In this document: piece after piece, positions 8,546 through 53,367 of the stretch
Layout of the letters: each line of letters starts with the position of its first letter
Position numbering within the stretch: position 1 is the stretch's first letter
Sequence record: NC_048668.1
Length of the DNA: 64,000 nucleotides
Strand: one strand, 5' to 3'
Position numbers and translations under genes: made by a program
The notes under the pieces: generated by a model
What the model was told of the DNA's origin: nothing
Seen by the model: only the letters and a program-made list of their open reading frames with translations
Database searches by the model: none

Positions 8546-8551
8546 TTAACG

Positions 8552-8992
8552 ATGAACCGCCAATTCGTTCAAGAAGTAACTGCTACACTGACTAAGCAGG
8601 TCGGTGTAAAACGCTCCGCAGTGAGCCAGGCTCTGCTGCTTACTCTGACCTACGGCCTGCTGATCCCGCCACAGATCTCGGAAGACCCAGCTGCTTATTA
8701 CCAAGAACATTACGAAGACAAAGTACGTCGCTTCGTAAACGAGTTCAATGAGCGCTACCTGATCGACGTGGGTATGGTTATCGAAGGTACTCGCCAAGTC
8801 TGGCTTGATCGTTACCGCGCCAACTATATCCACGACGAAGGTCAGATCACCGACTTCCTGGCAGGGAATAACCCAGGTCGTAAATATCTGATGAGCATGG
8901 ATCAGACTCTGGAAGAATCTGCATCTATCGCTAAAGCGGCCGCTGTTCTTTACCCACAGATCTCCGCGTATCTGATGGGTATCGATAAATAA
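8552..8992 (+). CDS. Hypothetical virion-region protein (146 aa)
   Basis: Clean ORF with biased codons in the head-gene operon. Confidence 0.8.
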   Translation: MNRQFVQEVTATLTKQVGVKRSAVSQALLLTLTYGLLIPPQISEDPAAYYQEHYEDKVRRFVNEFNERYLIDVGMVIEGTRQVWLDRYRANYIHDEGQITDFLAGNNPGRKYLMSMDQTLEESASIAKAAAVLYPQISAYLMGIDK

Positions 8993-36253: not shown

Positions 36254-38542
36254 ATGGCAAGACCATCGAAAAGCGCACTGCGCGGCAACCTGACCAAAAA
36301 TCTGGTTGAGAAAATCCACAATGCGGTAATGCGCAACGTAAACAGCCTGGGCGAAGGCTCTGCCGCTGGCGTGATGTCCGTATCTCTGGAAAGCTACAAC
36401 GACCTGGGTGTTAACGCTGCTGACGTTGACAGCACCCTGGATAACCTGACCCAGGATCTGGCCGAAGCGCAAAGCGATGCGGTTGGTGCAGTAAACGCAA
36501 TCGAGCAAGGTCAGTCTGACGGCGCCATCGTTCATGGCGGCGAGTTCATCGAAGAGAACGGTAACAAAGTAGCTGTTGAAGCTGCCGCTGTTCTGGCGAT
36601 GTCCTTCAAAAACCCAGGCGCTTACTACAAGGACGGTTATTCTAACCCGGCCTTCGAAAGCGGCGTTATCGTCCACAACATGGTTTCCTCCGGTGCCAAC
36701 GGCGCCATCGCGACTCTGCCGGAAAGCAGCCGTCCGTCGTTCGAATCCTTCGACGAAAAAGAAACCGAAAAATGGCGTGAACACAGCTACGCTATCAACA
36801 TGATGGCCGCTAAACAGCACCCATTCGCTGAACTGTTCTACCGCACTCAGATCATCACTCCTGACCAAGCTGGCTTCGTAATGTCGATCCGCCGTAACAT
36901 GGTCTGGGAAACCTACCAGGGTACTGGTCTGAAAGGCGACGCCGTTAAATTCCAAAAACGTAACATCCTGCAAGGTCTGCTGGACTACACCGTTCTGGAA
37001 AGCAACAGCACCGAACTGATCCCGTGCATCCACACCGGCGAGAACGATGACCAGTTCATCGACCCGACCCTGGTTGCACCGCGCAAAGTTGTTCAGTCCA
37101 ACGAAGAGTTCGAAACCAACTACCTGAAATTCGGTGTTGGCTTCAACCTGCCAATGCTGGCACAGACTCCTTCTCGTCTGCAGAAAGGTTCTCCAACCTT
37201 CTCCGACTCTCTGGACAGCCGTATCGCGCTGAAAGATCTGCTGGTAACCGTTTCCAAAGGCGGCACCAAAGAAAACGTGAACTTCTTCGTGAACCGCGAC
37301 CAGTACGCCGCGTACACCGCAACTCGCGAATACAACTTCCGTCAAATGCAGCTGAAATTCCTGTCGACCGTTTCTGTTAACGCAGAAACCAAAACCGTTG
37401 AAGGCGCGGAATCCGCTAACCTGAAAGGTCTGATCGACGCTGGCTACAGCATGGAACTGGCTGTTGGTATCGACGGCGAAGTAAACGTTGAAACCGGCTC
37501 CGGCGAAACCTACGCACGTCCTCTGAAAATCGCTAAGATCTTCGACAAAGACGGCGTTGAAATCGCACTGTCCGACGCGCGCGTTGCCGCTCTGATCGCT
37601 GGCCTGACTTTCGAAGCTGCGGGTTACACCCTGGAAGCTCGTCTGACCAACATCAACCAACTGGAACTGGGCCTGGCAATCGACTCCGACGTGATGAAAC
37701 ACGGCTTCATGATCCCAACTCTGCCGCCGCTGGTTATCATCAAGCCGGCTCTGCAAGACGAAGAGAAAGTGTATCCGCGCATCGAAGCGCTGACCACTGC
37801 TTACCGTGTGCAGATGCGTAACAACGCAGTAACCACCCTGCTGAACCGCCGCGATACTCTGAAAGCCTACCTGGGCGTTGGCGTACCGCACCCGATCGAA
37901 TCTAACCAAGGCCTGGAAGGTGTCGGCCAATACTACGTGCGCCCGTACTACATGGAAGCCGAAGTAGATATCCTGAAAGATCTGAACAACCTGACCTCGG
38001 CTGCTAAGCAGACTGACATTCAGGGTCTGTTGGTTAGCAAGATCAACGAAATGGTTTACACCGCTGACCAGCTGACTGGTTACACCGCTGCTCTGGAAGC
38101 TGCCTTCCCAGGCCGTACTCCTAAGCCGCACGTAGCTATCGGTACCGACATGCGTCTGCCGCAGTACCTGCAGATTCCTGGCGACGACCGTACCGTTGGT
38201 ATTGGTTACGACTACACCATCGCTCGTATCTCCGACCTGCGCATGAAAGATCAGATCATCATGACCTTCGTGCTGCCGAACGTTGACGAGCCGCACCCGC
38301 TGCAGCACGGCGTACTGGGCCTGATTCCGGAATACCTGGTTAACTTCCAGATGATCCGTAACCAGCGCATCGGTAACGAAATCCGTCTGACTCCGCGCTA
38401 CCGTTACTTCAACTTCCTGCCGATCATGATGAGCATTACCGTCAAGAACCTGGAAGAAGCAATCGCGGCGCGTACTGCTCAAGCGAACGACGTTAAAGTC
38501 ACCAACGCTGCCGATTTCAAAGGCGACGCGTCTGGCGGTTGA
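36254..38542 (+). CDS. Major capsid protein precursor (phiKZ gp120-like), 762 aa
   Basis: Strongest codon bias in the window; SLE-S, AFE-S and SFE-S propeptide sites; QHPFAELFY and LTPRYRYFNFLPI motifs; helicase-gp119-MCP synteny. Confidence 0.9.
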   Translation: MARPSKSALRGNLTKNLVEKIHNAVMRNVNSLGEGSAAGVMSVSLESYNDLGVNAADVDSTLDNLTQDLAEAQSDAVGAVNAIEQGQSDGAIVHGGEFIEENGNKVAVEAAAVLAMSFKNPGAYYKDGYSNPAFESGVIVHNMVSSGANGAIATLPESSRPSFESFDEKETEKWREHSYAINMMAAKQHPFAELFYRTQIITPDQAGFVMSIRRNMVWETYQGTGLKGDAVKFQKRNILQGLLDYTVLESNSTELIPCIHTGENDDQFIDPTLVAPRKVVQSNEEFETNYLKFGVGFNLPMLAQTPSRLQKGSPTFSDSLDSRIALKDLLVTVSKGGTKENVNFFVNRDQYAAYTATREYNFRQMQLKFLSTVSVNAETKTVEGAESANLKGLIDAGYSMELAVGIDGEVNVETGSGETYARPLKIAKIFDKDGVEIALSDARVAALIAGLTFEAAGYTLEARLTNINQLELGLAIDSDVMKHGFMIPTLPPLVIIKPALQDEEKVYPRIEALTTAYRVQMRNNAVTTLLNRRDTLKAYLGVGVPHPIESNQGLEGVGQYYVRPYYMEAEVDILKDLNNLTSAAKQTDIQGLLVSKINEMVYTADQLTGYTAALEAAFPGRTPKPHVAIGTDMRLPQYLQIPGDDRTVGIGYDYTIARISDLRMKDQIIMTFVLPNVDEPHPLQHGVLGLIPEYLVNFQMIRNQRIGNEIRLTPRYRYFNFLPIMMSITVKNLEEAIAARTAQANDVKVTNAADFKGDASGG

Positions 38543-38593
38543 ACGCTCGCAGAGGCCTTTGAAGAAACCTTACCGGGTTTCGATCCGGCCTAG
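38543..38593 (+). other. In-frame 16-codon extension after MCP UGA (TLAEAFEETLPGFDPA-TAG); candidate readthrough segment
   Basis: Direct translation; lies inside the transcript before the terminator; peptide matches motifs in other virion proteins. Confidence 0.6.
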
Positions 38594-38608
38594 GCCACAA
38601 GCCAATAC

Positions 38609-38639
38609 ACCAGGGACCTTCGGGTCCCTGGTTTATTTT
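38609..38639 (+). terminator. Strong intrinsic terminator after MCP
   Basis: ACCAGGGACC-TTCG-GGTCCCTGGT then TTATTTT. Confidence 0.9.
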
Positions 38640-38671
38640 GCCCTATTTCCATATCGACTTAAGTTCATGTA

Positions 38672-38679
38672 TATATTAC
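38672..38679 (+). promoter_or_regulatory. Candidate early (vRNAP) promoter TATATTAC
   Basis: Exact match to the phiKZ early consensus, upstream of the operon containing the nvRNAP subunit. Confidence 0.55.
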
Positions 38680-38763
38680 TACCTTGGAGTTGTGATGGAG
38701 TCGCGATCCATTACTAAGTTCTAACAGATCTGTTTCAACAAATTCTATTGGGGTACCATTACC

Positions 38764-39801
38764 GTGACACTTAAGAAGAGCACATGGAGAACAAACAGTA
38801 CCATCCTGAACCCTAAACGGTTGGATGTACTGAATAAAGAACTGGAGGCATCTCAAGTAACAATCGAAGTACGCGTTGTTAACTTGTTGAACCACCCGGT
38901 TATGGTTAAAGAGAACAGCGGCAATCGTCATGTAGTAAATCCGAAGAACGTACCTGCTGCTGGTCGCTGTATTGCGATCAGTGTTGTATTTTCTTACGCC
39001 AACAGCTTAGTTAAAATTAACGCTGACCACGATTACTCTGAGGAGTACATTCACGATGTGCTCGAACGGTATAAGGGATTTGCTAGCGTCCATGTCGATG
39101 ACACGGATGTTTTCAATCGCTTTAATCGTAACTATTCTCGTCTGGTAATGGCTTTCGACGAGCGTAATCTGAAGTCCTTAGGTAATCTGCTGGAGATTGC
39201 AGAATGGGGTATTAGTATCGACTGTAGCAGAGATGCGGCGACTAGAACCCTAGAGTCTGAATTTATCGAGGCTCATTTACCGAATGTGAAACCCGATAAT
39301 GATTGTCGTTATAGTGGCGTATGTGTCACTTTAAACGATCCTGATAATCGGCTACCAAGAGCATTCTATCGGATTGGCAGTGAGGTATTCGAGATAGATC
39401 TAGATCGAACGGCCGGTTGTGAACCGGGCGTCGAGCTGGCTGCTTGGAACATCATGATGCCGTCGATGGTGCCGATGGAAGAAACTCGAATGAAGTTCTC
39501 TATCGACGAAGCATTGTCAGGGGAAAATCCATTGGGGTTGAAAGTATTCACATCTTTGGAAGAGGCTTATGCTTCTCCAGAAAACGAACTCAAACGAGTT
39601 AAGGACGAAGTAGCGAAAGAGAAAGTCAAACAGCGAGATGATAAGCGTACCAGTGTTCGAGAAGAAAAGCTGAAATTCGGTCATGGTATCCTTAAGATCT
39701 TTAATGAGGCCGTGAAGACTACGTTACCGATATTAGTGAGTTGGGGTGCCAAGTTGTTTGGTATCTTTAAACGTTCTTCTTCAATAATGGCTTTAATCTA
39801 A
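38764..39801 (+). CDS. Hypothetical protein (about 340 aa); true start may be ATG 38784 with an extra C at 38811-38813
   Basis: Clean ORF between MCP and nvRNAP gene; C-terminal coiled coil and amphipathic helix. Confidence 0.7.
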   Translation: MTLKKSTWRTNSTILNPKRLDVLNKELEASQVTIEVRVVNLLNHPVMVKENSGNRHVVNPKNVPAAGRCIAISVVFSYANSLVKINADHDYSEEYIHDVLERYKGFASVHVDDTDVFNRFNRNYSRLVMAFDERNLKSLGNLLEIAEWGISIDCSRDAATRTLESEFIEAHLPNVKPDNDCRYSGVCVTLNDPDNRLPRAFYRIGSEVFEIDLDRTAGCEPGVELAAWNIMMPSMVPMEETRMKFSIDEALSGENPLGLKVFTSLEEAYASPENELKRVKDEVAKEKVKQRDDKRTSVREEKLKFGHGILKIFNEAVKTTLPILVSWGAKLFGIFKRSSSIMALI

Positions 39802-39818
39802 CTGTGGAGTAATCGATT

Positions 39819-41432
39819 GTGGATAATCGCTTGTATCAAGACATCATAGCAGACCTTCCTCAGTTTAACCCAGATATCGCAAAGGGTTATTCTGTAAAGG
39901 ACATGGAAGACGCGGAGGAGTATATCCATCGTATCTTCGAATGTGCTTCTGCTGACTTCCCGCCTATCTTCAAATTTGTGGGACTCCGTAGACTAACGCC
40001 TGAAGAGGAACAGCGTGAAATCGAACGGACTAGCGAGCGAATCCCGGAACGTGATGTCTCTCAGACAGACGTTTACATGTGTGAGGCTATCTTCGACTTC
40101 GACGGTCAGAAGGTAACTCGTAATATCAACCTGCCGTATATGCGTGAAGCTGGCACGATCTTCCTGCGCGGAAGTCGTAGCACAATTCACCCGATCCTAG
40201 CCGACCTGGTGTTCAGCGTCTCCGACCTCGGTTTGTTTACGATGTTGTTGAGAGCTAAGTTTACCCTTACCCGCACCAACTATGGTGTCCTGAAGGATGG
40301 TGAGTCTATTACTCACTTCGTGGTAGCTGGGAACATTTACCAGAGCAAAGAGAGTGTTGCGGATTCCCGCAAGGCCAACAAAGTCGAATCGACTATTGGC
40401 CATTACCTGTTTTGCAAGTATGGCGTTACCGAGACATTCAAACGGTATTATGACACTGATGTCATTATCGAAGAGAAGCGTCCGGGACTATCGGAGATCT
40501 ATCCGGTAGAGGACTATGTAATGTTTACGACTATGGGTTTGCCGCCTCTCGAAAAACGACGCCGCGAACAGTCGGATTGGACTCCGACTAATCTAGTACT
40601 CATTATCCCTCGGGACAAATGTGAGGAACATCCAGGGGTATCTCTTCTGGCCACTCACTTCTTCTACGTAATCGATCAGTTCCCAAGCCGTTTCACTTTG
40701 GAACACATCGATCAAGATGGCACCTGGCGCATCGCAATGGGGTATATTTTACACCGCGCCAAAGAGAACGAAGGTAAGCTGCTTAACGAAATCGATAAGC
40801 ACTTAAACTCGCTCGACCGTTACGTCGACTATGAAACAAAACGTCACCTGGAAATGGAAGGTATTCAGGTAGACAATCTGTACGATCTGTTCGTTCATGT
40901 ACTTGACACGATTACAAGTCGTATTGTTAACGATAACTCTGGCCGTATGTGGGGTAAGCATTTATTAGTTAAACGTTATGCACTGTCCGGTATTACTGAA
41001 GCGATCTTTAACTTCACCTGGCAGCTGGAAAAAGAACGTGATTCTCTGACGTTCCGTAGACTGCGTTGGACATTGTCCCGCATGATTACTCCAGATGCAT
41101 TCCTGGGTATCCAAAGTAAACACGGGGAATTGGGTTCCGTCCAATATCCTGGTGATTGCATGATCTTCAAACACACCTGCGTCTCTATTCGTCAGATGAA
41201 CGCGGTGACGGGCAAAGGCAAAACGAAGAGCTTCAAACCTAACGAGCTCGCCTATCAACTCGACGGCTCTATTGCCGAAGCGGGCTCTGCCTGTAACTTT
41301 GCGAAAGGTTCTCCTGATGGCCGTAGTCGTCTTAACATGTTCCTCCACATCGACAAAAATGGACGTATCGTCCGTAACCCAGATCTGGTGGAACTTATCG
41401 ACCAAGCCCAGAAAGAAATTTCGAAATACTAA
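39819..41432 (+). CDS. Non-virion RNA polymerase beta-like subunit (phiKZ gp123-like)
   Basis: LPQFNPDIAKGY, RNINLPYMREAGTIFLRGS and PDGRSRLNMF motifs; 537 aa; synteny after MCP. Confidence 0.8.
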   Translation: MDNRLYQDIIADLPQFNPDIAKGYSVKDMEDAEEYIHRIFECASADFPPIFKFVGLRRLTPEEEQREIERTSERIPERDVSQTDVYMCEAIFDFDGQKVTRNINLPYMREAGTIFLRGSRSTIHPILADLVFSVSDLGLFTMLLRAKFTLTRTNYGVLKDGESITHFVVAGNIYQSKESVADSRKANKVESTIGHYLFCKYGVTETFKRYYDTDVIIEEKRPGLSEIYPVEDYVMFTTMGLPPLEKRRREQSDWTPTNLVLIIPRDKCEEHPGVSLLATHFFYVIDQFPSRFTLEHIDQDGTWRIAMGYILHRAKENEGKLLNEIDKHLNSLDRYVDYETKRHLEMEGIQVDNLYDLFVHVLDTITSRIVNDNSGRMWGKHLLVKRYALSGITEAIFNFTWQLEKERDSLTFRRLRWTLSRMITPDAFLGIQSKHGELGSVQYPGDCMIFKHTCVSIRQMNAVTGKGKTKSFKPNELAYQLDGSIAEAGSACNFAKGSPDGRSRLNMFLHIDKNGRIVRNPDLVELIDQAQKEISKY

Positions 41433-41464
41433 TTTAAATCTTAAGTCTTGCTAGGAGTAGTAAA

Positions 41465-43648
41465 ATGAGTGACTATAAATTTTCCGATCGTGACGTTGCT
41501 AATTTCGTTAAAGAAATCCTCGACACTGAATCTCGCCGTAATGAACTGATCGGCTATCTGGACGATCTGACTCGTGATCGTCGTTCAGATGTTGGTGAGA
41601 AGCTGATGCGTTATGCAATCAGCGCTTATGCTCTGGAATATAACCGTACTAAGAAGTCTTCCGAAGACATCGTGTACGATCTGGTTCTGTGGTATGCAGC
41701 TGCCCGTGCAGCAGACGACCGTGGGTTCACTCGTAACCTGAGCAATGCTGAAATGGATGACCTGGCCGATATGGGTCGCATGGCTCTGGAGATCATCGAT
41801 GAGCTGGCAGAGATGAACGAATCTCGTGGCCGTGGTTATGGTCGTGATGATCGTCGTGGTGGTGGCCGTGAAAGTTCCTTCGGTCGCGCAGCACGCGAAC
41901 AAGATCGTCGCGGTTATTCTGCCGGTGGTTCTCGTGGTTATGGCGGCGGTCGTCAGGAAGGTTATCGTTCCGACTATAGCTCTGCTGCAGCCCGTGGTGT
42001 AGATCAACGTGCTCCGCAACGTCCAGTCTATGGCGAACGTACCCATGCTCGAGAAGAGGCTCAGCCACGCGTCAAAACTGCATTGGATGTTATGGCAGAG
42101 ATGCACCTGAAACGCCGTCAAGCTGAAGCGGGCATTCAGGAACCGGAACCTCAACCACGTCGTCAGGAACGTCGTGTAGAGGAACCAACTCGCCGTGAAC
42201 TTGCAACTCGTAATCCAGTAGACGCAGTTCGTCGTAACCATGCACCTGCTTACGAGCGTGTAACTCCTGAAACCATCACCAGCAAACCAGAGTGGACTGC
42301 TGACCCGAATGGCCCAGTAGCAGGTAACGCTGACTTCATCCCAGATGACATCGGTCAGTGGGGCACTACTGAAAGCGGTAAAGTTCTGCCAAGTCCTGAG
42401 CGTCCTATCACTCAGTACGAAATCCTGAACAACTGCTATGACCTGAACGATATCGAAGTTGTGGAAGCAATTCCAGAACGTCCACGTTTCAGTTGCAACG
42501 GTGCAGCCCCTTCCTGGGAAGCTGATGAAGTAGCGCCACAATGGAGCATCAACAAAGACGGTTATCGTGTACTGGCTTTCCGTAAACTGTCTGAAGAGGA
42601 AAAAGAGAAAGTGCGTAAAGAAATCCACACTATGCCGGAAATCATCGGCGTACGTAATGGCCCAGGTAAATCTCATCCACAACGCGAAGCTATTCTGCTG
42701 GCAGCTGGTAAAACCACCCGCTTCAATCTGGAAGAAGCACGTCGTCGTGAAGAAGAAGCTCGTAAAGAGTGGGAAGACGTTGTAGCTGTTCTGAAAGCAG
42801 AAAACGAAACTCTGCCAGAAGAAGAGCAAAAACCAATCCCGGATCTGGATCTGAGCGATTACAAACCGACTATCGACGAAACTGTGAAAGTAGGTAAAGT
42901 GATCAAGGCATTCGGCCACGATGCGCTGGAAGTTAAGATCATGGATCTGCGTACTGAGCTGGATACCGAATCCTCTCTGGATCTGCGTACTGAAAACTAT
43001 CGTCCTCTGCACGATGCCGGTTCCGCTGAAGCAGCGCGTGAAATGATCGAAGGTCTGCGTGGTCTGGTGATCACTGGTTCTCCGGTCTCTAACGTAACTC
43101 TGCCGCAGATGCTGCGTAGCTTCGAAAATCGCGTAGATGGTCTGCCAGGTCATCTGATCGTGTTCATCAAGCGCCACATCGTGAATGTCATCAACGATAT
43201 CCTGGGCATGGAAATGGGCAGTACTCTGACCATCGACGACGTTAACGATCTGCGTACTATCGAAGCAGATATGGTTAAAATCGCCGGTGAAGAGTTCGCT
43301 GCTAAGTTCTCCGAAACGGTTAACGAAAACATCCGTCGTTTCGAGTTCCTGACTACTGGTGAAGATATGGGTAAACCAACCTATATCGTTAGCAAGAAAT
43401 CTTCCGGCGTTCTGACCCTGCCGATGACTATTGCTGACATCAGCATGAAGAAACGTCCTGGTATCAAACTGATGTCTACCACGGTAAACCGTGATAGTGC
43501 ACCAAAACTGTATCAAGCCCTGAACATGATGAACATGGCTCACGGTGGTTTCAACAAAGAGCTGTATCTGGCCGACGGCACCTGGGTTACTGTAACCAAA
43601 GATGCTATGGCTAAAGGTCAGTTCGTACTGGCTTACAAAACCGCATAA
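41465..43648 (+). CDS. Conserved hypothetical protein (727 aa) with RGG/RGY-rich low-complexity region
   Basis: GGAG RBS; GRGYGRDDRRGGGR...SRGYGGGRQEGY; folded N- and C-terminal regions. Confidence 0.8.
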   Translation: MSDYKFSDRDVANFVKEILDTESRRNELIGYLDDLTRDRRSDVGEKLMRYAISAYALEYNRTKKSSEDIVYDLVLWYAAARAADDRGFTRNLSNAEMDDLADMGRMALEIIDELAEMNESRGRGYGRDDRRGGGRESSFGRAAREQDRRGYSAGGSRGYGGGRQEGYRSDYSSAAARGVDQRAPQRPVYGERTHAREEAQPRVKTALDVMAEMHLKRRQAEAGIQEPEPQPRRQERRVEEPTRRELATRNPVDAVRRNHAPAYERVTPETITSKPEWTADPNGPVAGNADFIPDDIGQWGTTESGKVLPSPERPITQYEILNNCYDLNDIEVVEAIPERPRFSCNGAAPSWEADEVAPQWSINKDGYRVLAFRKLSEEEKEKVRKEIHTMPEIIGVRNGPGKSHPQREAILLAAGKTTRFNLEEARRREEEARKEWEDVVAVLKAENETLPEEEQKPIPDLDLSDYKPTIDETVKVGKVIKAFGHDALEVKIMDLRTELDTESSLDLRTENYRPLHDAGSAEAAREMIEGLRGLVITGSPVSNVTLPQMLRSFENRVDGLPGHLIVFIKRHIVNVINDILGMEMGSTLTIDDVNDLRTIEADMVKIAGEEFAAKFSETVNENIRRFEFLTTGEDMGKPTYIVSKKSSGVLTLPMTIADISMKKRPGIKLMSTTVNRDSAPKLYQALNMMNMAHGGFNKELYLADGTWVTVTKDAMAKGQFVLAYKTA

Positions 43649-43730
43649 TCCACTTAATATGTAGCGTGTGCTCTCGTCGGTGATCCGGCGAGGGCTTCAC
43701 GTCAACTATGAGAGACCCAAGGAGGTCCAA

Positions 43731-44096
43731 ATGAACACCAATTATACTACCGCTAGTAACGTCCTTTCTTTCGTTCAAAACCTGTATGCGGACGAAGCAC
43801 GCCGCTACGGCATTAAGGTAGCGCGTCACTCTGACGTAGAACTGAACCAGTTCTTTAAAGTAATGGATCTTAACGGTCTGTTGAAAGATGCACTGGACAG
43901 CGTTGTGAAATACATCCAGACTTACGAGTCTGTTCACAATGCCGGTGAGAAGTACAAATCCATCCTTCTGCCTGATGCTGTAGGTTCCGCTTACCGCACC
44001 ATGCTGTTGATCACTCGTCTGACTAAAGAAGGTTACAACGTTAACTTTGCTGTAGAAGACGAAAACGGTTTCAGCTCCCTGCTGAAGACTAAATGA
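43731..44096 (+). CDS. Hypothetical protein (121 aa)
   Basis: AAGGAGG RBS before ATG 43731. Confidence 0.75.
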   Translation: MNTNYTTASNVLSFVQNLYADEARRYGIKVARHSDVELNQFFKVMDLNGLLKDALDSVVKYIQTYESVHNAGEKYKSILLPDAVGSAYRTMLLITRLTKEGYNVNFAVEDENGFSSLLKTK

Positions 44097-44099
44097 CAA

Positions 44100-44133
44100 A
44101 ATAGAGTAGAGGCCAAATGGCCTCTACTCTGTG
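44100..44133. terminator. Bidirectional terminator hairpin
   Basis: ATAGAGTAGAGGCC-AAAT-GGCCTCTACTCTGT between convergent genes. Confidence 0.8.
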
Positions 44134-44160
44134 TCAGCTATTCAGCTTTTCTTTTTTTGC

Positions 44161-46961
44161 TCAGGGTGGTGCCAGGTTGTCGCCTTCAGCATCTTGGAAC
44201 GGATCTTCGTTTGCACGGTCACCGCCAAATTCATCTTCACGACTACCGAAGTCATTACCGCCCAGGTCACCTTCTCCGAAGTCTTCGAACTCGTCTGAAC
44301 CCGTATCGAATTCTGAGTCACTGGAGCTATTGTCGCTACCCCAATCACTACCGCCTCCGAAACCGCCTTGGTTAGCGTTTTCAATTGCTTGACTCAAGTC
44401 AGGGTTAGTTTCCTTCGTAACTTCCAAGCGGTTCTCACGGAGCTGACGAATAACTGCAGCGGTGTCGCCCAGGTTATGTACCAGGTTAGCCATGTGCGCA
44501 TTCAGCTCTTTAGAGAAGTCAATCGCAGGGTTATCTTCGCTACCTACACGAGTCAGTTCACTCAGACCAAAGTCCATCCCCGTCTTAGCCAGGTACTCAC
44601 GTTTGAAGTAAGCGGCCACGTTAGCTTTGAGGTGATTGATCTTATCTTGGTCTTCGTCACCCAGAGATGGCCCGATGAGTTCTGGAGAGATGTAGTTCTC
44701 AACCATGTCATCAATCCATTGAGAGACTTTGTCGTATTCTTCTTTCTGGTTCTCGATCCGGTTAGATTCAGGACGAGGAAGTTCCAGATAAAGGACGCGG
44801 AAGAACTCTTCAATGGCATCGGTATATTGCAGTGAGTATGGGTTATCCATATCGTTGCAACGGTACTCTTCTGGGAGCTGGTCGTTGTGTTCACGGAAGA
44901 TCTCTTGGATGCGCCCAACCAACGTACCGTCAGACAAAGTATAAGACTTAACAAACTTCTTACCGTGTTTGCAAGTGTCATCCTGAATCATCATGATACG
45001 TTTTGCGTAAAGCTGGTTAGTTGTCCAGCGAGAGATAGCAAAGTCTGCCTGGGTAGTCATGTCCACCATTTCAGGTGGTTACGAACAGACCCATGTATTG
45101 CTGACGTTGCAATTCACGAGAGAACTCTGGATCGATTTGTTGACGTTGAGATTGGAACTCAGAAACATCGACTGTCGTGTTAGGCATACGCGGGTTACCT
45201 TGGACTTCAATAACCACACCCATGGAACGAATAACACGGAACATCTCAGCAGCAGACGTTACGTCTGTCGGAGTACCGCCAGCCTGTTGACGCATGAACT
45301 CATCGATCATGACGTGATACGCTTTGTCCGGATCAGGGTCACGAGGGTCAATGTTCATGGTAACTTTAGTACGGCCAACTGCGTTTTTAACCCCGGCCAT
45401 GAAGTTAGCAAAGGTTGTCATTGCACGCAGAGCGGATACTTGCTTGATGTCAATCCATCAGGGATTTACCCATGCCGTTCTTGTCGTAGTCGTATGCAAA
45501 GTACGCAACGTTCTCAACAGGTACGAATACCATGTGAGTACGCTGGTTAGCAAACTTACGGAACAGGAACAGACGCATGATATCTTCGTTCCAACCCAAC
45601 TTAACGTTACGGCCAAGCAAACCGTTTTTAATACGGTTAAGTACGTTCTCTTCCAGAACCTGGTCGAAGATACGTACACGCTCAGCGGCGTTAGTTTTAT
45701 CAGCATCGTAACAAAGACCGGAACCCAACATCTTAGTCTGTTGAATAAGTGAAGAGGTCTGGTTCATCTGACTATCGCCGTTAAGACCATTGTTACCGTT
45801 CTTAACAGCACGAGCGATCTCGTCGGTTACATCCAACGGGTGACCAAGTTCATCCAGGAGAATAATGTAGCCTAAGTGGTTGCGAGGCTCACCTTTAGGG
45901 AAGCACGGAATACAAGATTCACTTGGTACTTTAATAACCAGCGGGTGACCAATAGAAGAACGAGAAGCTTCAGCCGCCGTTGTCATTACCTTAACACGTT
46001 CCATCGCACTACCGTTGTCGCGATAGAGGCTGTTGGCAAGGGTGCGGATCTCCTTGATATGACCGTTACCGCCGCTAAAGGACTCGTTGGAAATACGAGT
46101 AGTCGAACGGAAAGAACGGTTCATTCGCTTCTGGTTGATCCGGTCACGAACCTTACCTAAACCGAGAACTGCAATGTTATCGGTAATGGTACACGCGTCG
46201 TTAATGCGCGTAGGTGTTTCACGGTCACCGGCTGGGTTCCAGAAGAAGTTTTCCATGCTAGGAGTGCTGACTTCGCGTCGCTTCTCTTTCTTGGCTTCTT
46301 CTTCAGTAAGACCTGGGTCGCCCAAGATACCTTTACCTGTATGTTTCAACGTACCGTCTTTAAACTGTGATGCAATGTGGGCCGCGTACATTTCGTCGGT
46401 CATTGCAGCAGATTCGTTAGAGACGCCGTTATAGGTACGGTCGTTGATGATATCGTCGATTACTGCTTCAGGAACGATAACGCCAATCCAAGCACCGTAG
46501 TCGAACAATGCTTCACCGATGATCTCCGGCAGTTTATCGCGGAGAGGGTAATAACCACCATCACCGAAATGTTCGCGGATAACTTCCGTGATTTCATTCA
46601 GTATAGTAGGACGAATTTCTGAATCTTCTGTTTTAAAGACCAGCTCGCCGTCGAACATGTCTACAGGAGAAAGGGTGGTGGAAATGATCATTTGTTTGAT
46701 CAGTTTCAAATCGCTACTCAGCTGCAGGATAGTTTCTGCATCCAAGTTCTTCTGAGCACGGTTTCCGACGATGTGGTCGAAAATAGTCTCATTATGTACC
46801 TTAACACCTTCACCCTGGCTATGATCACCGGTTAAATGGTCACGTACCATCTTCGTCATGATAGACGTGGCAGCAGGCGTATTTTCTAACCATTTCGTGG
46901 GTTTACTCCGAACACTCGTATCGGGACCACTACTGGTAAGAGTAGGTTTCTTCATTATCAT
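44161..46961 (-). CDS. Portal protein (phiKZ gp129-like), about 930 aa, split by probable insertions at 45452-45453 and 45079-45080
   Basis: Three consecutive ORFs join as KSLMD/DIKQVSALRAM and GLFV/PPEMVDM; HPLVIKVPSESCIP..GEPRNHLGYIILLDE.G motif; divergent from the baseplate gene. Confidence 0.75.
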
Positions 46962-47014
46962 GATTTACCAAATCCTTATTTCTCTCATGTGTTCGCATAA
47001 AGACAGGAGGCCGC

Positions 47015-49585
47015 ATGGCGGATACCACGCAACGATTGTACGTTGATGGCGCAATGAGTCTAGCGCAGACGATGACAATCAAGTTCAACGCCGGTGCGGT
47101 AGCGATCAACAATTATTTAACCGAAATAGGTTACACCGTTGACCCTAATGTTCCATCCACTTGGCGTTACTACATGAACCTTGCTGGCAAGTATCATGTC
47201 AGTAATCAGCAAATGAAAGTGACCTCCTTGGACACCTTGGAGGAGATTGACTTCACATATGATAACCTCTTAATCCACCGAGCTACTAAAGCAGCCTATA
47301 AGTACGGTTCCCGTTACTACAATGAACTTGTAGAACAATACCCAGAACAGGAATTGCTAATTAGGGGCGTTTTATGGCCAGTGGATATTGACAAGGCGAT
47401 TGATGCCAAGGACTTCACTATCCTTTATTACGATAGTGACGAGGTTGATCCCAATGAAACGTATTTGATCCAGGATCTCCAAGAATGGATTTACCGGTTT
47501 ACGTATCGTTGGTATCTAGTATTTGCTGCAGCTGTACAAAAATATTACCCGGCGACGTTTTTTGGGACTTTATTTATTCACCTGGTTGGCGAGATAATCA
47601 GTATTCGTGAGAACTATTGCCGTACTCAATACGTGCATAGCTATCACCTTTGGGCGTACCTTGGTTCACACGGTCGTCTGAATGCGTACAAGGATTACGT
47701 CAACATCACCCAGGCGTTGTGGTTGTACCGTAATATTCGCTACATCGATAACCACGCCGGTAAAACGACTACCTTCGATGATCTTATCCTTAATATCCTG
47801 ACAGCCCGTAACATCCCGCTGACAGCTTATTTCCTGCGCCATAACTCGAAGGATGTTCCTGAGTCTATTCTCCCTGAAGGGGAAGTAGCTAAGGATCCTA
47901 AGAACTACCTGGCAGAGTCCGTTCAAGGTATCGAACGAATCTCAATTGGGGAAGCTCTGGATAACGAAGTTAACTCGGCTAAGGATAACGATAAGTATCT
48001 GGCCAAGCAGAAAATCGATGTTCCTATTCGAGTCGCTAACGCCATTACCGGTGAGCTACCTACTAAGGTACTCGAGTCGGTCATGATTGACCGTTCAGAT
48101 TCTGTACCGCACAAGTTTGTTGATACGTTAATGGGTGAGTGGATCTATCTGGCGACTGAAGGTCGTTACGTAGCAAACATCACCATCCCTAACCCGGCTA
48201 CGCAAGAAGCCATGTCGATGACGGTAAGGGAAGCATTGATCCTTTGGGTCTACTGTGCGATGCGTCAGTTTGAAATGGTACTGGAAGACGTCCCTGATCT
48301 GACAGCCTGGTTTGTGCAACGTCTAGCGGCTCCTGAGTTCTCTGAACTGCGTGGTGTGTGCGAACCTAAGTATGTTAGTGAAGCGGCTATCTTGATGGCT
48401 CTGACTGAGCATACTCCGGTGTCTACTATTATCTCGACTGAAGCGTTCTACAACACTGTAGCTCAGATTCAAAGTAACATTAACGCCCATCGCGTCATGT
48501 ACACGCGTCAGCAAGACTTCCGTGCTCGTGGTCAGATGGAAGTGATGACCAATCGCTTTTACATCAACAAGAAATGTCAGTTGTCAGCCACACCGATTAA
48601 ATACGCAGACTGGTTCCACACCAAGAACTGGGATATGGAGTTGAGTTCCCCTGAAGCGTATTCCGATTTCTGTTTCCAGCTAATAGAAGTTGCAACGGGT
48701 GCTAACTTGCGCTCGACAATATCGGTGTCCGATGTACACAGCGCCATGATAGCGATCATGACTCAGCTGTCTAGTTACTCTGTACAGTACGTCCACAAAA
48801 CTAACGCATCTCCAAACATCATTGTTGATAACTTGGCGATTCGTTTCGGTGGCATTGAGTCTCGTCCTAGCGCTGACTTTAAAATTGACCAACGCGTTGA
48901 AATCATTAACCAGTACCAACGTGGTAAACTCTCTCCTGACAAGTCTGCATTTGAAGGGATTGAGATTGGCTCGAAGTATATTCATGCGCCACACTTCTAC
49001 CGTGTGTTCTCGTCCGTTGACTTCCTGCCAGATACCCATGTTGCTACTCGTCACCAGATTGAGATCGCTGAGGTTAGGTTCAAAGGTTCGCTTGCTAAAG
49101 ATATCGGTCTTGAGATCAGTAAACATGATCTTGACGGACTGTGGCTTTATCTGGCAACCGCTCGTCCAATTAACGAAGTCATCACTAACCCAAGGTTACC
49201 TGGGTTGTGGGTACGCGTACCTCGTGAAGATGAGTACTTACCTAACGAGATTACCAAAACCGATATTGAAGGACTGTGGACGAATGTTATCCCTGGCCCA
49301 GAGAAATTGGTCATTGGCAATAAACCACTCCCAGGTCTGTGGTTAGAGCCTATCGTTCCTTACGAGTTGGAAGACTTTAAAGAACGTCTCGAAGGTTTCG
49401 ATCCACCTGAACCATTTAAACCAACTACGTTGGCTGATGGTTTCGATGAGAATCTGGGTGGCTTCGTTGGGTACATTGAACCTGAGTTTGACCTCTTCAA
49501 TATAGAGGAAGAACTTCCTGGCTTCGATTCGCCTGATAGCGAACCAAAAGCACCTTACGATTTCTCTGCTTTGTTTGGCGAGTAA
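47015..49585 (+). CDS. Baseplate structural protein (phiKZ gp128/130-region-like), 856 aa, with C-terminal L-x-G-[LF] repeats
   Basis: WRYYMNLAGKYH, YPEQELLIRG, VHSYHLWAYLGSHG and QALWLYRNIRYI motifs; 7 terminal repeats. Confidence 0.7.
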   Translation: MADTTQRLYVDGAMSLAQTMTIKFNAGAVAINNYLTEIGYTVDPNVPSTWRYYMNLAGKYHVSNQQMKVTSLDTLEEIDFTYDNLLIHRATKAAYKYGSRYYNELVEQYPEQELLIRGVLWPVDIDKAIDAKDFTILYYDSDEVDPNETYLIQDLQEWIYRFTYRWYLVFAAAVQKYYPATFFGTLFIHLVGEIISIRENYCRTQYVHSYHLWAYLGSHGRLNAYKDYVNITQALWLYRNIRYIDNHAGKTTTFDDLILNILTARNIPLTAYFLRHNSKDVPESILPEGEVAKDPKNYLAESVQGIERISIGEALDNEVNSAKDNDKYLAKQKIDVPIRVANAITGELPTKVLESVMIDRSDSVPHKFVDTLMGEWIYLATEGRYVANITIPNPATQEAMSMTVREALILWVYCAMRQFEMVLEDVPDLTAWFVQRLAAPEFSELRGVCEPKYVSEAAILMALTEHTPVSTIISTEAFYNTVAQIQSNINAHRVMYTRQQDFRARGQMEVMTNRFYINKKCQLSATPIKYADWFHTKNWDMELSSPEAYSDFCFQLIEVATGANLRSTISVSDVHSAMIAIMTQLSSYSVQYVHKTNASPNIIVDNLAIRFGGIESRPSADFKIDQRVEIINQYQRGKLSPDKSAFEGIEIGSKYIHAPHFYRVFSSVDFLPDTHVATRHQIEIAEVRFKGSLAKDIGLEISKHDLDGLWLYLATARPINEVITNPRLPGLWVRVPREDEYLPNEITKTDIEGLWTNVIPGPEKLVIGNKPLPGLWLEPIVPYELEDFKERLEGFDPPEPFKPTTLADGFDENLGGFVGYIEPEFDLFNIEEELPGFDSPDSEPKAPYDFSALFGE
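49120..49540 (+). repeat. Seven protein-level repeats (D/P/E-L-x-G-[LF]-W/D)
   Basis: HDLDGLWLY, PRLPGLWVR, TDIEGLWTN, KPLPGLWLE, ERLEGFDPP, ENLGGFVGY, EELPGFDSP. Confidence 0.8.
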
Positions 49586-49651
49586 TCTTAACGACCAAGG
49601 ATGGTTGTTATGTTAATATTTCAGCTAATGTAACGCCTATCGGAGTCAACA

Positions 49652-50491
49652 ATGGCAAACGCGAATTACTACAATAAGCCCACTAACCGATTAGTCTTTG
49701 ACTTGATCAAAGAAGCTAACCCGGAAGCGGACTTCTCAGAAGATCAAGTAAGGTTAACGAACTTTACCCAGAACACCAATGGCGACCCGTTACGTAACAC
49801 CGCAGGTATTCTGAAAGCAATCCCTGGCATGGGCCGTGAAGGTCAAGAGAACCTGACCTGGAACCGTCCTGCACTGAACGAGATCTTTAAAGAGATCAGC
49901 GTTTACTGTTCTCCTAACGGTAAGTTCAAGAAATCTGACTTACTGAAAGAAATCAACAGTAACTATAACTTCCAGCTGGACGCCGGTGATATTTACGACG
50001 GTGTACTGAACCTGTCAACTCTACCGACCAAAACGGTTATCGTGGTACGTCCTACCTGTCCTGCTTTTACTGGTCAGTTAGAGATTACCATTGGTGATCC
50101 TAAGATCGCTCTGGAGACGGTTATTCGTAACCCTGACCTGGATGGCCTGGCTTACCCTACCAACCAGTCTGAGAAGATCCAAGGTCCCCTGTACATGTAT
50201 GCCAATGACTACACGTACGATGCCACTGGTCTTCAGCAGTTTGGTTACGGCGATCCTATCCAAGGCGAACTCCTGGAAAGCCTCAACCGTAAATCGCCAG
50301 ACACCTGGGTACTGAAACCTACCCCTGCTCCGTGGAACGCTAACGGTGCTGACGTATGGTACAATGGCCCGACTGCTCAGGCTCCGGTATACGTGAACAC
50401 TTCGTACCAGCGTTGCTTGGTTATCCACCTGGATAAAGAGTATTGCTCTAACGTTGCCGGTCACTTGATCCTGCATTACAACATGCCATAA
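49652..50491 (+). CDS. Virion structural protein (279 aa), beta-rich N-domain plus NPDLDGLAYP linker
   Basis: GGAG RBS; two domains separated by the shared motif; TATG at 49609 upstream. Confidence 0.7.
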   Translation: MANANYYNKPTNRLVFDLIKEANPEADFSEDQVRLTNFTQNTNGDPLRNTAGILKAIPGMGREGQENLTWNRPALNEIFKEISVYCSPNGKFKKSDLLKEINSNYNFQLDAGDIYDGVLNLSTLPTKTVIVVRPTCPAFTGQLEITIGDPKIALETVIRNPDLDGLAYPTNQSEKIQGPLYMYANDYTYDATGLQQFGYGDPIQGELLESLNRKSPDTWVLKPTPAPWNANGADVWYNGPTAQAPVYVNTSYQRCLVIHLDKEYCSNVAGHLILHYNMP

Positions 50492-50494
50492 TAG

Positions 50495-50530
50495 AAGCCT
50501 GCTGCAAAATGCAGCAGGCCTTATGCTTTA
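50495..50530 (+). terminator. Hairpin terminator
   Basis: GCCTGCTGCA-AAA-TGCAGCAGGC then CTTATGCTTT. Confidence 0.65.
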
Positions 50531-50626
50531 TTGTTCGCTTAGTATGGAAGGCATGTTCTTCTTTAGAACGTTTTGCCACCATCCATTTCCCTGGATGTTT
50601 TAAAAACCTGTTTAAGGATTTATCCG

Positions 50627-51160
50627 ATGGCACGTATCGCGTTTAACCCGGCAAACTCTGCCGATGATGAATTCACTCGTCTCCTGGTAAATGGTACTAC
50701 CATCCCAGAGCTGAAAGCAGTTAAGCTGACCACTGATTACACTGTAACCACCCCTGCCGCCGCTAACACCGGTGAGAAAGATGGTAACACCGTTATCGGC
50801 CTGACCCCTGCGGCTGGCAGTAAACTGCTGAAAGGCGACGCACGTGAGTTCTACTACGATCGTCTGAGCATCGCTTCTGAACTGACCCGTAAAGCAGTTA
50901 ACCTGAAGTCTGCTGACGCACTGACCCCGGCTAACCGTGACGCGTTCGCCCTGACCTGCGTAAAAGCAGTTTGGGACAAATTCGTTGCTGCTGACGTCGT
51001 GTTCAAAGAAGACAAAACTGAAGGCGAAGTTGTAGCGTACGTCTACACTATCAAAGCCGACAACAAAGTCTTCAACGGCGAATTCACTATCACTTCCGGC
51101 GACCAGACTCTCCAGTCCTTCAGCGAGAACCTGGGCGGCTTTGACGCACCGGCTGCGTAA
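50627..51160 (+). CDS. Highly expressed small virion protein (177 aa), candidate decoration/fibre subunit
   Basis: AAGGA RBS before ATG 50627; MCP-like codon bias; own terminator; ends TLQSFSENLGGFDAPAA. Confidence 0.7.
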   Translation: MARIAFNPANSADDEFTRLLVNGTTIPELKAVKLTTDYTVTTPAAANTGEKDGNTVIGLTPAAGSKLLKGDAREFYYDRLSIASELTRKAVNLKSADALTPANRDAFALTCVKAVWDKFVAADVVFKEDKTEGEVVAYVYTIKADNKVFNGEFTITSGDQTLQSFSENLGGFDAPAA

Positions 51161-51170
51161 TAGTTGACCG

Positions 51171-51207
51171 AAGAGTCGGAGGGATGACCTCCGACTCTTA
51201 TTTTATG
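51171..51207 (+). terminator. Intrinsic terminator
   Basis: AAGAGTCGGAGG-GATGA-CCTCCGACTCTT then ATTTT, followed by TATG. Confidence 0.8.
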
Positions 51208-51262
51208 TCACCTTCCCCTCATTTAGCTTTCCACTAGAGAGCTATCGCTTTAAGGATTTAAA

Positions 51263-52202
51263 ATGAGCGCAAGTACTAATACCAACTTGATTACGCGCAC
51301 TGTTCTTAGTGGGATGCTGCAAACGTGTTTGCTGGCAGGTATCCCGTTAACAGTTCTGGATTATACGACGCTCAATCAGCGTCTGGGTATTAACGAAGAT
51401 GCTAAGTTGGCATCTAACGAAATGCCTACCTTCGGTTACTGGTGCATCGGTGACAAAGGTCACTGGGTTGTCCCTACTTCCGATGGCGAAGTTATTATCG
51501 AACCAGCTGAACATACCGCCGGTGACTTCGCCCCGTTCAACATGATTCCGTTTGTCATGCGTGAAGAGTCTAACGACCTGTCTGTAGAAGAGCGTAAGAA
51601 GTACGGCCTTCGTAAATCAGAGAACCGCAACGGGATCAACTATTTCTCTTACTACGCCAAGGCCATCGACCTGACTGGTAAGAAGCCGCGTATGGAACGT
51701 ACTACCGTGAAAGACGGCGTTGCGACCACTACCGAATACACGCCGAACAACTCCAACCTGTATCCTGAGCGTAAAACTCTGACGACCAACGAAGCCGTCA
51801 CTACCAACTCCGATACTCTGACCGTTTCGTTGACTACTGATTGTACTGTTCGACGACAACGACGTTAAAGAGCTGAACAACGTATCTCGCATCCTGTACG
51901 GTAACGAGAAGCGTGCAATCATCTCTGAGATCGCATTGGTATCAGCATTCAAACGTGTTGTACAGGCTCCCGGTCCTGGCGGCGGTGCTATCTCTATCAC
52001 CGAAGCGATCTGTGCCCAGGTACTGACCTTCTTGTCTACTTATCGTCAGATGTCCTTCGACAACCGCGGTTTCGTTATTACTCTGGAAATGGGTGCTAAC
52101 GAACCGATGATGACATCCGACGCGGTAGGTACCAGCTCAGGTCGAGACGCCGTTCAAAACGCACGTCAGTTGTTCTCTGCGAATATCGCACCACGCGCTT
52201 AA
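51263..52202 (+). CDS. Conserved virion structural protein (phiKZ gp139-like), about 312 aa, split by a probable extra T at 51841-51842
   Basis: YTTLNQRLGI, FGYWCIGDKGH, PFVMRE.SNDL, YFSYYAKAID; removing one T gives LTTDVLFDDNDVKEL...RAIISEIALVS. Confidence 0.65.
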
Positions 52203-52218
52203 AACGAAGGAGCGGTAA

Positions 52219-53367
52219 ATGAGTACTATCTTTGGCCACGATACCATCAAGGCTGAAGTTATCGATTTAATCAATAAGAAGAATGCTCAGTTTGGTGCAG
52301 ACTTTACCGAGGACAACCTCGAAGTCACGTGGCTCAGCTACGATGCATTAGACCGTCGTCAAACGATGATGACGAAAGATCTTTCTGGTCGATACTTTGG
52401 TTTACGTGATATCCGCTTCTTCAAACGCGATTACGATCTCCTCTTTAAAGGGATCGACGTAAAGATCCAGGTAGGTTCAGGCTACAACAACCGCGCGGTG
52501 CTCAAAGAGCTTTCTCGTGCATACGGGTTACCTCCATTCGAAGATTACGACTTTGCTCCAGGTCTACTGGACATGTCTATCGAAGTAGGTGACCACGAGC
52601 AATTGATCGAATGGCCATTTGCTGACTCCAGCTGGGGTTGGACAGGGACTTGTCGATTCAAGCTCCGTAACATGAAGACCTCGCTGGAAACGCTTATTCC
52701 AGACGGTACATTGGATCGATTCCATCCAGAAGAGCTGAAAGGCGTCTTCTACGAATTGGTCAACGGTACGTTGAGTGGATTGGATTACCCAGAATACTTC
52801 GACCTTGGTAAGATCATTACGATCACCGATCTCGAAGGTTTGGAATACCCAGACGATATCGACTTGGGTGTTATTATCCATACCACAGATCTGGAAGGTC
52901 TGGAATATCCGCCGATGACTGACATCAGCAAGTTCCAAACTAGCGATCTCCAGGGCTTGGAATACCCTCCTGCTTACGACTTGACTAAACTCAATGTCTT
53001 TGCATTGGCCGGTCTGGATTATCCAAGTGGTACTGGCGCAGGTCAAACTTCTGCGTACAGCACGACCTACCCGCTGGACTTCTCTGATTACCAACGTGCA
53101 ATCCGTACTTATCGTTTAGGCGATACGATCACGGACGTTAACTTGGTGAACGTCATTGTTAGCATGATCCAGTCTAACTGGACTAAGCTGCAGGGTGAGA
53201 CTAACAAGTCTAACCTCTTTAACTCCTTCTTGAATGCGACCATCCAGAGCATTGAACAGAAACGTTCGATCCATGGTTGGACTATTTCGGTCGGCGTTAA
53301 GTTGAGTTCTCAACGCGTACTTCGCGGCAATGCCGTGCTGCGTTACGACATCCAATCTGAATATTAA
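52219..53367 (+). CDS. Virion structural protein (382 aa) with five L-x-G-L-[DE]-Y-P repeats
   Basis: AAGGAG RBS; repeats at about 19-20 aa spacing. Confidence 0.75.
   Translation: MSTIFGHDTIKAEVIDLINKKNAQFGADFTEDNLEVTWLSYDALDRRQTMMTKDLSGRYFGLRDIRFFKRDYDLLFKGIDVKIQVGSGYNNRAVLKELSRAYGLPPFEDYDFAPGLLDMSIEVGDHEQLIEWPFADSSWGWTGTCRFKLRNMKTSLETLIPDGTLDRFHPEELKGVFYELVNGTLSGLDYPEYFDLGKIITITDLEGLEYPDDIDLGVIIHTTDLEGLEYPPMTDISKFQTSDLQGLEYPPAYDLTKLNVFALAGLDYPSGTGAGQTSAYSTTYPLDFSDYQRAIRTYRLGDTITDVNLVNVIVSMIQSNWTKLQGETNKSNLFNSFLNATIQSIEQKRSIHGWTISVGVKLSSQRVLRGNAVLRYDIQSEY
52760..53030 (+). repeat. Five tandem about 19-20 aa repeats ending L-x-G-L-[DE]-Y-P
   Basis: TLSGLDYP, DLEGLEYP, DLEGLEYP, DLQGLEYP, ALAGLDYP. 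Confidence 0.85.

Follow-up and report, generated by a model that had tools for sequence, protein, structure and literature searches.

The DNA analysed here, referred to throughout as the window, is the first 64 kb of the genome of Serratia jumbo phage vB_SmaM_2050HW (NC_048668, 276 kb; a phiKZ-like Moabitevirus of Chimalliviridae type, hereafter 2050HW), which it matches with 100% identity over identical coordinates, and our subject is a short peptide motif, L-x-G-[FL]-[DEWA]-x-P, that recurs in its virion-protein genes, all of which lie on the plus strand. The gene for the major capsid protein (MCP; 36254-38542, 762 residues) matches PHROG 3231, major head protein, at E 2e-222, in agreement with the NC_048668 annotation, and ends in TGA. 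Directly behind this stop lies an in-frame extension (38543-38593), which has 16 codons (38543-38590) with an acidic L-x-G-F-D-P copy of the motif and then TAG, making it a candidate for programmed UGA readthrough. A terminator scan placed an intrinsic-terminator-like hairpin and T-run (38609-38640) 3' of the extension. The other carriers are encoded in a baseplate gene cluster. A baseplate wedge protein of 856 residues (47015-49585) ends in an array of seven motif copies (49130-49534, residues 706-840), of which four are GLW-type and the following three acidic GF-type. Next come a full-length DUF7941 protein of 279 residues (49652-50491; N-domain, linker and C-domain), which is related to phiKZ gp127 and has the motif at residues 163-169 (nucleotides 50138-50158), and a probable short DUF7941 protein of 177 residues (50627-51160; N-domain and tail), which is the counterpart of Goslar gp23 and phiKZ gp143 and has the motif at its extreme C-terminus (nucleotides 51131-51151). 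The last is a DUF7941 protein of 382 residues (52219-53367) in which the linker occurs five times between the N- and C-domains, as tandem units of 19-20 residues (52744-53031, residues 176-271), each with L-x-G-L-[DE]-Y-P.

An initial annotation of this stretch had proposed that one docking motif is shared by these five proteins, and every occurrence it quoted could be located. The strict pattern has nine copies in the 62 non-overlapping open reading frames (ORFs) of the window (20,696 residues), compared with 0.12 expected (500 residue shuffles, maximum 2). Two are in the 856-residue protein, one each in the 279-residue protein (residue 163) and the 177-residue protein (residue 169), and five in the 382-residue protein (starting at residues 185, 205, 225, 244 and 263); the remaining 58 non-overlapping ORFs have none. 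The count of seven given for the wedge tail holds with the looser core [LI]-x-G-[LF] (residues 706, 728, 751, 772, 792, 814 and 834) but not with the strict pattern, which finds two. Shuffles of the wedge tail gave 0.5 looser-core copies on average (maximum 3), and shuffling within each tail gave 0.4-0.5 copies, compared with five observed in the 382-residue protein and seven in the wedge. Copies are spaced by 20-23 residues in the wedge tail and by 19-20 in the 382-residue protein.

DUF7941 proteins have an N-domain followed by a disordered linker and, optionally, a C-domain (Basu et al., bioRxiv April 2026, and Sci Adv November 2026, PMC13742148). The 279-residue protein matches the Pfam DUF7941 profile (PF25613) from end to end (E 8e-81), and the 382-residue protein matches it at E 6e-22, both scores being above the 27-bit cut-off. 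The 177-residue protein scores 21.3 bits (E 2e-4), which is below the cut-off, and the profiles of the 279- and 382-residue families did not detect it; with support from PHROG 1037 (E 1e-6) and gene order, its membership is probable, not certain. It stops after the linker, as Goslar gp23 does. These DUF7941 and PHROG matches confirm the suggestion of the initial annotation that the three proteins have an N-domain in common, which had been based on short strings found at residues 75 (177-residue protein), 68 (279) and 66 (382). A tblastn search of the 2050HW genome found no further DUF7941 paralogues. The 279-residue protein also matches PDB chain 9xqd_0 (PHIKZ127) by sequence (E 0.004), and a Foldseek search of the PDB with the N-domain of the 382-residue AlphaFold2 model gave the same chain as its sole significant match (phiKZ gp127 N-domain, probability 1.00, TM-score 0.64 over 150 residues) and no pilin or immunoglobulin-like acceptor. 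The phiKZ gp127 N-domain has been located in the outer baseplate.

Judged from alignments, the motif forms the core of the linker that DUF7941 proteins conserve. The family profile matched 805 sequences at E <= 1e-3, and in the 149 representatives retained at <=50% mutual identity the linker columns are L in 80%, G in 67%, L/F/I in 85%, Y in 72% and P in 76%, with an upstream L (76%) and a hydrophobic pair also kept. In the 279-residue family, L163, G165, L166, Y168 and P169 are invariant in 17 sequences (the query and 16 homologues) down to 47% identity; the initial annotation had described this copy as the interdomain linker. The Goslar gp23 tail aligns to the same DUF7941 profile positions as the 279-residue linker, and the linker positions of the 279-residue family profile match again in three of the five units of the 382-residue protein. 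In the family of the latter, five copies stand at fixed positions in 19 sequences (the query and 18 homologues) down to 46% identity; their spacers vary, and the L, G, L, Y and P of copies 2-4 are invariant. AlphaFold2 predicts the 382-residue protein as two confident domains joined by low-confidence residues 154-274, the five-copy array itself having a predicted local distance difference test score (pLDDT) of 30-50. We also considered the motif as a prohead-protease site (G-x-E) and rejected this: the acidic position is not conserved across the family (N 26%, D 9%, K 9%), and the carriers are tail proteins.

What such a linker may do has been modelled by others. AlphaFold 3 models of Goslar gp22/gp23 and phiKZ gp126-gp127 show the DUF7941 linker adding to the next protomer's N-domain as a beta-strand, the Goslar gp23 tail is predicted to dock on the next N-domain, and Goslar gp22 filaments have been seen by negative-stain electron microscopy (EM) (PMC13742148). 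The head-to-tail, donor-strand-like arrangement suggested by the initial annotation matches this linker model and these filaments; it is therefore not new, as linker strand addition and filaments were published independently in 2026. The filament proteins of that study (Goslar gp22/gp23 and phiKZ gp126/gp127/gp143) are laid out like the 2050HW trio, with an N-domain, a linker and, in some, a C-domain. The Goslar virion has ~580 copies of gp22 and ~2140 of gp23, alongside 1615 of the MCP. Basu et al. assume six anchoring sites on the baseplate and arrive at filaments of nearly 3 micrometres; their paper contains no sequence motif, wedge-tail array, five-fold linker paralogue, readthrough or capsid post-stop extension (PMC13742148).

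The 856-residue protein had been called a baseplate protein, and homology bears this out. Its residues 7-599 match PDB chain 9xqs_C (PHIKZ128) at E 3e-110, and it matches chain 11lx_Bh ('Virion structural protein', 803 residues) at E 2e-117 and PHROG 3222 at E 4e-244. Chain 11lx_Bh and the Goslar gp35 translation are of equal length and have the same C-terminal tail peptide. In phiKZ, a wedge consists of one gp128 and two gp87, and gp128 touches the first gp139 dimer of the 'spoke' (PMC13250141). By homology, and from the phiKZ and Goslar structures, the 856-residue protein presumably sits in the inner baseplate of the virion. AlphaFold2, run with a 100-sequence alignment, gave residues 1-610 a pLDDT of ~90; for residues 620-856 it was mostly under 50, and secondary structure was nearly absent. 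Another deposited chain of this wedge protein, 36za_sR, has 595 residues only, so the tail was probably left unmodelled there.

Motif-bearing tails are widespread in the wedge family. Across 120 wedge homologues, the core motif is 11 times denser in the tails than in the first 620 residues, and all 71 copies of the GLW type are in tails, with none in heads. Of the linker signature in its exact form, [LIVM]-x-G-[LF]-x-[YF]-P, there are 26 copies in the tails of 15 of these homologues and none in 74,400 head residues. Copies are mostly 21-23 residues apart, and their number ranges from 0 to 7. For example, 2050HW has seven, the Goslar gp35 translation has three (L-x-G-L) and phiKZ gp128 has none; the first ~600 residues of phiKZ gp128 and Goslar gp35 are homologous to the 2050HW protein, and gene order is common to the three phages. 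Text searches of the phiKZ and Goslar structure papers found no mention of the wedge tail. Taking sequence and model together, the tail resembles a disordered arm bearing an array of linker-like peptides that varies with lineage, and does not look like a folded domain; this pattern fits an anchoring rack.

The remaining copy lies behind the capsid gene. The MCP stop codon (TGA, 38540-38542) is followed by 16 in-frame codons that include L-P-G-F-D-P, as the initial annotation had noticed, then by TAG and the terminator hairpin; the extension has no in-frame ATG, GTG or TTG. Among the post-stop extensions of 60 ORFs, it is the sole one with a GF-type copy. A terminator is annotated at the equivalent place in phage Moabite, and since the terminator sits downstream, the capsid mRNA should include the extension. 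Phages Moabite and Totoro keep both the TGA and the extension, while the last MCP residues before the stop cannot be aligned. Substitutions in the extension among 2050HW, Moabite and Totoro fall 4/2/9 on the three codon positions, with six synonymous and four non-synonymous codon changes; this coding-type pattern suggests that the in-frame extension is under protein-level selection. Rfam families gave no match in 38300-38900.

The association of the extension with TGA is seen in other lineages too. We sampled 21 MCP genes, mostly from individual GenBank phages (scans of IMG/VR and metagenome contigs gave 8 and 4 loci). All 12 that end in TGA, from at least six lineages (2050HW, Moabite, Totoro, PhiEaH1, PCH45, SPLA10, RP12, Goslar, phiKZ and three metagenomic loci), are followed by a conserved extension in the same frame, and the nine that lack one all end in TAA. 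Ten of the 12 extensions contain a G-[LF]-type copy, the exceptions being phiKZ, which has a different peptide, and one degenerate metagenomic locus; none of the nine TAA-ended genes has the motif after its stop. Three of the TAA-ended MCPs, those of Xanthomonas phage RTH11, Salmonella phage SA002 and Erwinia phage RAY, have an L-x-G-L copy inside their own C-terminal tail, which in RTH11 is the full linker signature L-x-G-L-x-Y-P. In these three phages, display would be constitutive, not limited by readthrough.

We infer that readthrough of the capsid gene occurs, UGA readthrough being the simplest reading of an extension that is selected as a peptide. A recoded genetic code was rejected: TGA is the ordinary stop of 14 of the 60 window ORFs, so it has not been reassigned. 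The residue before the MCP TGA is Pro or Gly in eight of the 12 genes, and the base after it is C, A or G, never T. Pro or Gly before a stop slow peptide release, and the context of TGA may affect its leakiness. In published structures, the C-terminal arm of the phiKZ MCP is modelled to its last residue and takes part, at the hexon centre, in a bundle of six helices with a pore, in phiKZ pentons the arm touches gp244 on the outer surface, and the arms of the Goslar MCP form a barrel at the hexon centre. An outward-facing extension is plausible.

The extension also tracks another protein. We searched extension peptides against all stop-to-stop ORFs of the surrounding 30-64 kb, and the C-terminal tail of the short (177-200 residues) DUF7941 protein ranked first in Goslar (gp23, score 55 compared with 34 for the best background), phiKZ (gp143, 63 compared with 33), PhiEaH1 (gp204, 40 compared with 29) and RP12 (gp070, 43 compared with 31). 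With the 2050HW extension, the wedge tail came first (42) and the 177-residue tail second (34), over a background of 30. With that of PCH45, a DUF7941-type linker came first and the wedge C-terminus second; by eye, its short-paralogue tail has the same L-x-G-F core. In 2050HW, Goslar and phiKZ, the top score was not attained by any of 300 shuffles, but 25 of 300 did so for the long PCH45 peptide, which is thus not significant. Tail and extension have the same sequence type within each lineage: 2050HW has G-F-D-x-P, Goslar D-G-F-[VI]-x-P and phiKZ R-Y-L-E-N-G, which is unrelated. Each variant is confined to those two places in the 32-87 kb searched by six-frame translation; for example, the R-Y-L-E-N-G repeats of the phiKZ gp143 tail recur only in the MCP post-stop segment (8513-8590 of the phiKZ locus, L030). 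The 3' end of the 2050HW 177-residue gene has minimal nucleotide similarity to the extension, and for this reason we rejected a recent DNA duplication of that 3' end behind the MCP gene. Because the extension follows the lineage-specific tail of the short paralogue, in six diverged lineages with phiKZ and Goslar among them, it appears to be selected as a peptide that imitates the DUF7941 donor tail.

The copies fall into three classes, and this qualifies the idea of a single motif. GLxYP copies are those of the 279- and 382-residue proteins, GLW copies are the first four of the wedge, and acidic GFDxP copies are the last three of the wedge, the 177-residue C-terminus and the MCP post-stop segment. 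The shared core stands, and it is all that the classes have in common (L-x-G-[LF]); the claim of one motif does not extend to the full pattern, and phiKZ has an unrelated sequence in the same role. The link across classes rests on this core, on the wedge tails that have the exact linker signature in other lineages and, within the GF class, on the similarity of the peptides themselves. One 189-residue metagenome representative of DUF7941 (P0301) has a tail with a GLW-type copy (L-N-G-L-W) resembling the wedge-tail repeats; it is the sole direct link that we observed between the GLW class and a DUF7941 tail.

From these comparisons, we think it rather probable that the DUF7941 linker-type peptide, placed on the wedge tail and on a readthrough capsid extension, anchors head-to-tail DUF7941 filaments to the virion. 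In the published AlphaFold 3 models, the linker donor segment adds as a beta-strand to the N-domain of another DUF7941 protein, giving head-to-tail filaments. With one internal copy in the 279-residue protein and one C-terminal copy in the 177-residue protein, the DUF7941 copies would extend or branch such chains, and the 382-residue protein with five would be a possible branch point. The wedge tail would be a seven-copy anchor on an arm predicted to be disordered; six wedges with seven copies each would offer up to 42 sites per virion. UGA readthrough would put one anchor copy on a minority of capsid subunits, a minority because the extension is made only when the UGA is read through. The outcome would be a network in which flexible filaments are attached to the baseplate and also, sparsely, to the head. 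The central step, binding of the wedge-tail and capsid-extension peptides to DUF7941 N-domains, is one that we infer from the sequences. The initial annotation's observation is thus confirmed and its interpretation partly supported: anchoring racks fit the predicted disorder of both arrays and the co-variation of the capsid extension with the short-paralogue tail.

Several points weigh against this reading. We know of no proteomic evidence for an extended capsid protein, the phiKZ and Goslar structure papers do not mention readthrough, and published capsid maps lack DUF7941 density, though sparse, irregular decoration would average out. Some relatives, such as Klebsiella phage KpLz-2_45, have the short paralogue and neither an extension nor a capsid motif. 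A profile built from 98 GLxYP linker units of the 382- and 279-residue families and run over all six-frame segments of the window recovered its own families alone and missed the wedge tail, the 177-residue tail and the capsid extension. At profile level, 'one motif' is therefore unsupported, and the three classes may have different partners, or GLW another role. The strictly kept spacing of 20-23 residues in the wedge is also expected of a folded repeat, and the low pLDDT of the tails may partly stem from poor alignment there. Lastly, phiKZ gp143 (L030 33694-34227), which is a weak DUF7941 match in our hands (E 0.0017, below the Pfam cut-off), appears in the literature in two roles, as a DUF7941 member and as a lysis regulator specific to the holin, non-essential by transposon sequencing (TnSeq) and not a fibre subunit. 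The short paralogue may thus have, or also have, a non-fibre role.

This last point leads to the alternative with the best claim, which we nevertheless consider unlikely: the peptides may bind some other partner, such as a component of the host surface, a different baseplate protein or, in the case of the short paralogue and the extension of the capsid gene, the lysis machinery. phiKZ gp143 alters holin timing, AlphaFold 3 predicts binding to the holin's N-terminal domain, and the differences among the three motif classes would suit separate partners. In the lysis variant, accumulating capsid would titrate the holin regulator. However, the Goslar gp23 tail is the very segment predicted to dock on the next N-domain, it aligns to the profile positions of the 279-residue linker, and in other lineages the wedge tails include exact copies of the linker signature, all of which favour a DUF7941 partner.

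It is also quite unlikely that the wedge-tail and 382-residue copies merely build a repetitive structure, for instance a fibre shaft or a thin beta-solenoid, by folding on themselves or on symmetry mates. The regular period of 19-23 residues, the conserved positions of the copies and the hydrophobic positions kept between copies in the 382-residue family would be natural in such a structure, as would the failure of the linker profile to retrieve the GLW class. Against this, AlphaFold2 gives both arrays a pLDDT below 50 and almost no secondary structure beside confident domains, and each 382-residue unit copies a single-copy linker that has been modelled as an intermolecular strand. The wedge copy number, moreover, varies from none to seven among homologues, and the short 36za_sR chain suggests that the tail was not modelled.

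A further reading, that the MCP post-stop segment is untranslated and is either an RNA or transcription-termination element or the decaying remnant of a longer capsid protein, we regard as very unlikely. The segment does lie between a stop and a terminator hairpin, and several lineages do without it. However, its substitutions concentrate at third codon positions, with synonymous changes keeping the peptide; it is always in frame and always behind TGA, never TAA; and its conservation exceeds that of the final residues of the MCP itself. In amino acids, though hardly in nucleotides, it follows a tail of another protein that is specific to the lineage, it has no Rfam match, and three TAA lineages have an L-x-G-L copy inside the MCP C-terminus. 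Finally, a chance or composition effect of short segments rich in Leu, Gly and Pro, for which the four-residue core and the 61 occurrences of the looser [LIVM]-x-G-[LF] in the window might speak, is refuted by the excess of strict copies and their absence outside the named proteins, by the within-tail shuffles and by the conservation of copies across homologues.

Known systems offer partial parallels. In phage Qbeta, a leaky UGA at the end of the coat gene yields A1, a minor capsid protein with a C-terminal extension. The likeness lies in a UGA-ended capsid gene with a conserved in-frame extension and in an extended minority with an added function. Qbeta, however, is a small single-stranded RNA phage with a folded extension of ~200 residues, whereas 2050HW is a 276-kb double-stranded DNA (dsDNA) phage in which a putative readthrough peptide of 16-55 residues would mimic the tail of another protein. 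In phage T7, a frameshift at the end of the MCP gene (gp10A/gp10B) likewise gives a minor extended form. T7 is thus a dsDNA phage with a sub-stoichiometric, C-terminally extended MCP made by recoding at the end of the gene, but by a -1 frameshift, not stop readthrough, and we know of no docking function for the gp10B extension. In the donor-strand complementation and exchange of chaperone-usher pili, each subunit donates a peptide that completes or extends its neighbour's beta-sheet, and head-to-tail polymers result; here, the likeness is in working principle only (functional), with no homology.

A few other features of the window deserve mention. Between the 177- and 382-residue genes, in the same baseplate cluster, lies a motif-free DUF7208 gene (51263-52202, plus strand), the homologue of the baseplate 'spoke' proteins phiKZ gp139 and Goslar gp32; Pfam matches DUF7208 on both pieces of the gene, on phiKZ gp139 and on Goslar gp32. 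It is interrupted by one frameshift and annotated as two coding sequences in this record, while it is intact (312 residues) in Moabite and Totoro, the 2050HW region being one base longer; this could be a sequencing error or a true lesion in a probably important baseplate gene. A 727-residue protein (41465-43648, plus strand) has no Pfam or PHROG match and contains a long run of Arg/Gly/Glu-rich, RGG-like low-complexity sequence near residues 120-260. It sits between an RNA-polymerase subunit gene and the baseplate cluster, which is the position of phiKZ gp124. Pectobacterium phage vB_ParM-25 (ON375847.1, host Pectobacterium aroidearum) is 99.9-100% identical to 2050HW over 47015-53367 and the capsid 3' end, pointing to either an unusually broad host range or a mis-assigned host. 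There are no tRNA genes in the 64-kb window.

DUF7941 proteins are among the most abundant virion proteins of Chimalliviridae (~2,700 copies of gp22 and gp23 together in Goslar). The published estimate of 3-micrometre filaments follows from the assumption of only six anchoring sites, whereas the 2050HW data suggest many more, on wedge tails and capsid. The papers searched gave no description of a wedge-tail rack, a five-site paralogue or a capsid anchor displayed by readthrough; for these three elements, the comparative evidence is strong and the mechanism is deduced from it. The docking peptide turns them into a concrete and testable wiring diagram of wedge racks, a branching paralogue with five sites and a capsid anchor made by readthrough. 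More tentatively, and with slightly more doubt than belief, we suggest that programmed UGA readthrough of the MCP gene is used by many jumbo phages that form a nucleus, phiKZ and Goslar among them, so that the head seeds filaments, with the wedge as a second rack and the motif classes addressing different paralogues. Of the ~1,600 capsid subunits, a small fraction would end in a peptide that mimics the donor tail of the abundant short DUF7941 protein, and the head, beyond the six baseplate sites, would seed DUF7941 filaments; RTH11, SA002 and RAY would have fixed an L-x-G-L copy in every capsid subunit. If true, readthrough of an MCP gene would be unusual for a large dsDNA phage, and there would be an unannotated capsid isoform in model phages for which cryo-EM and proteomic studies already exist.

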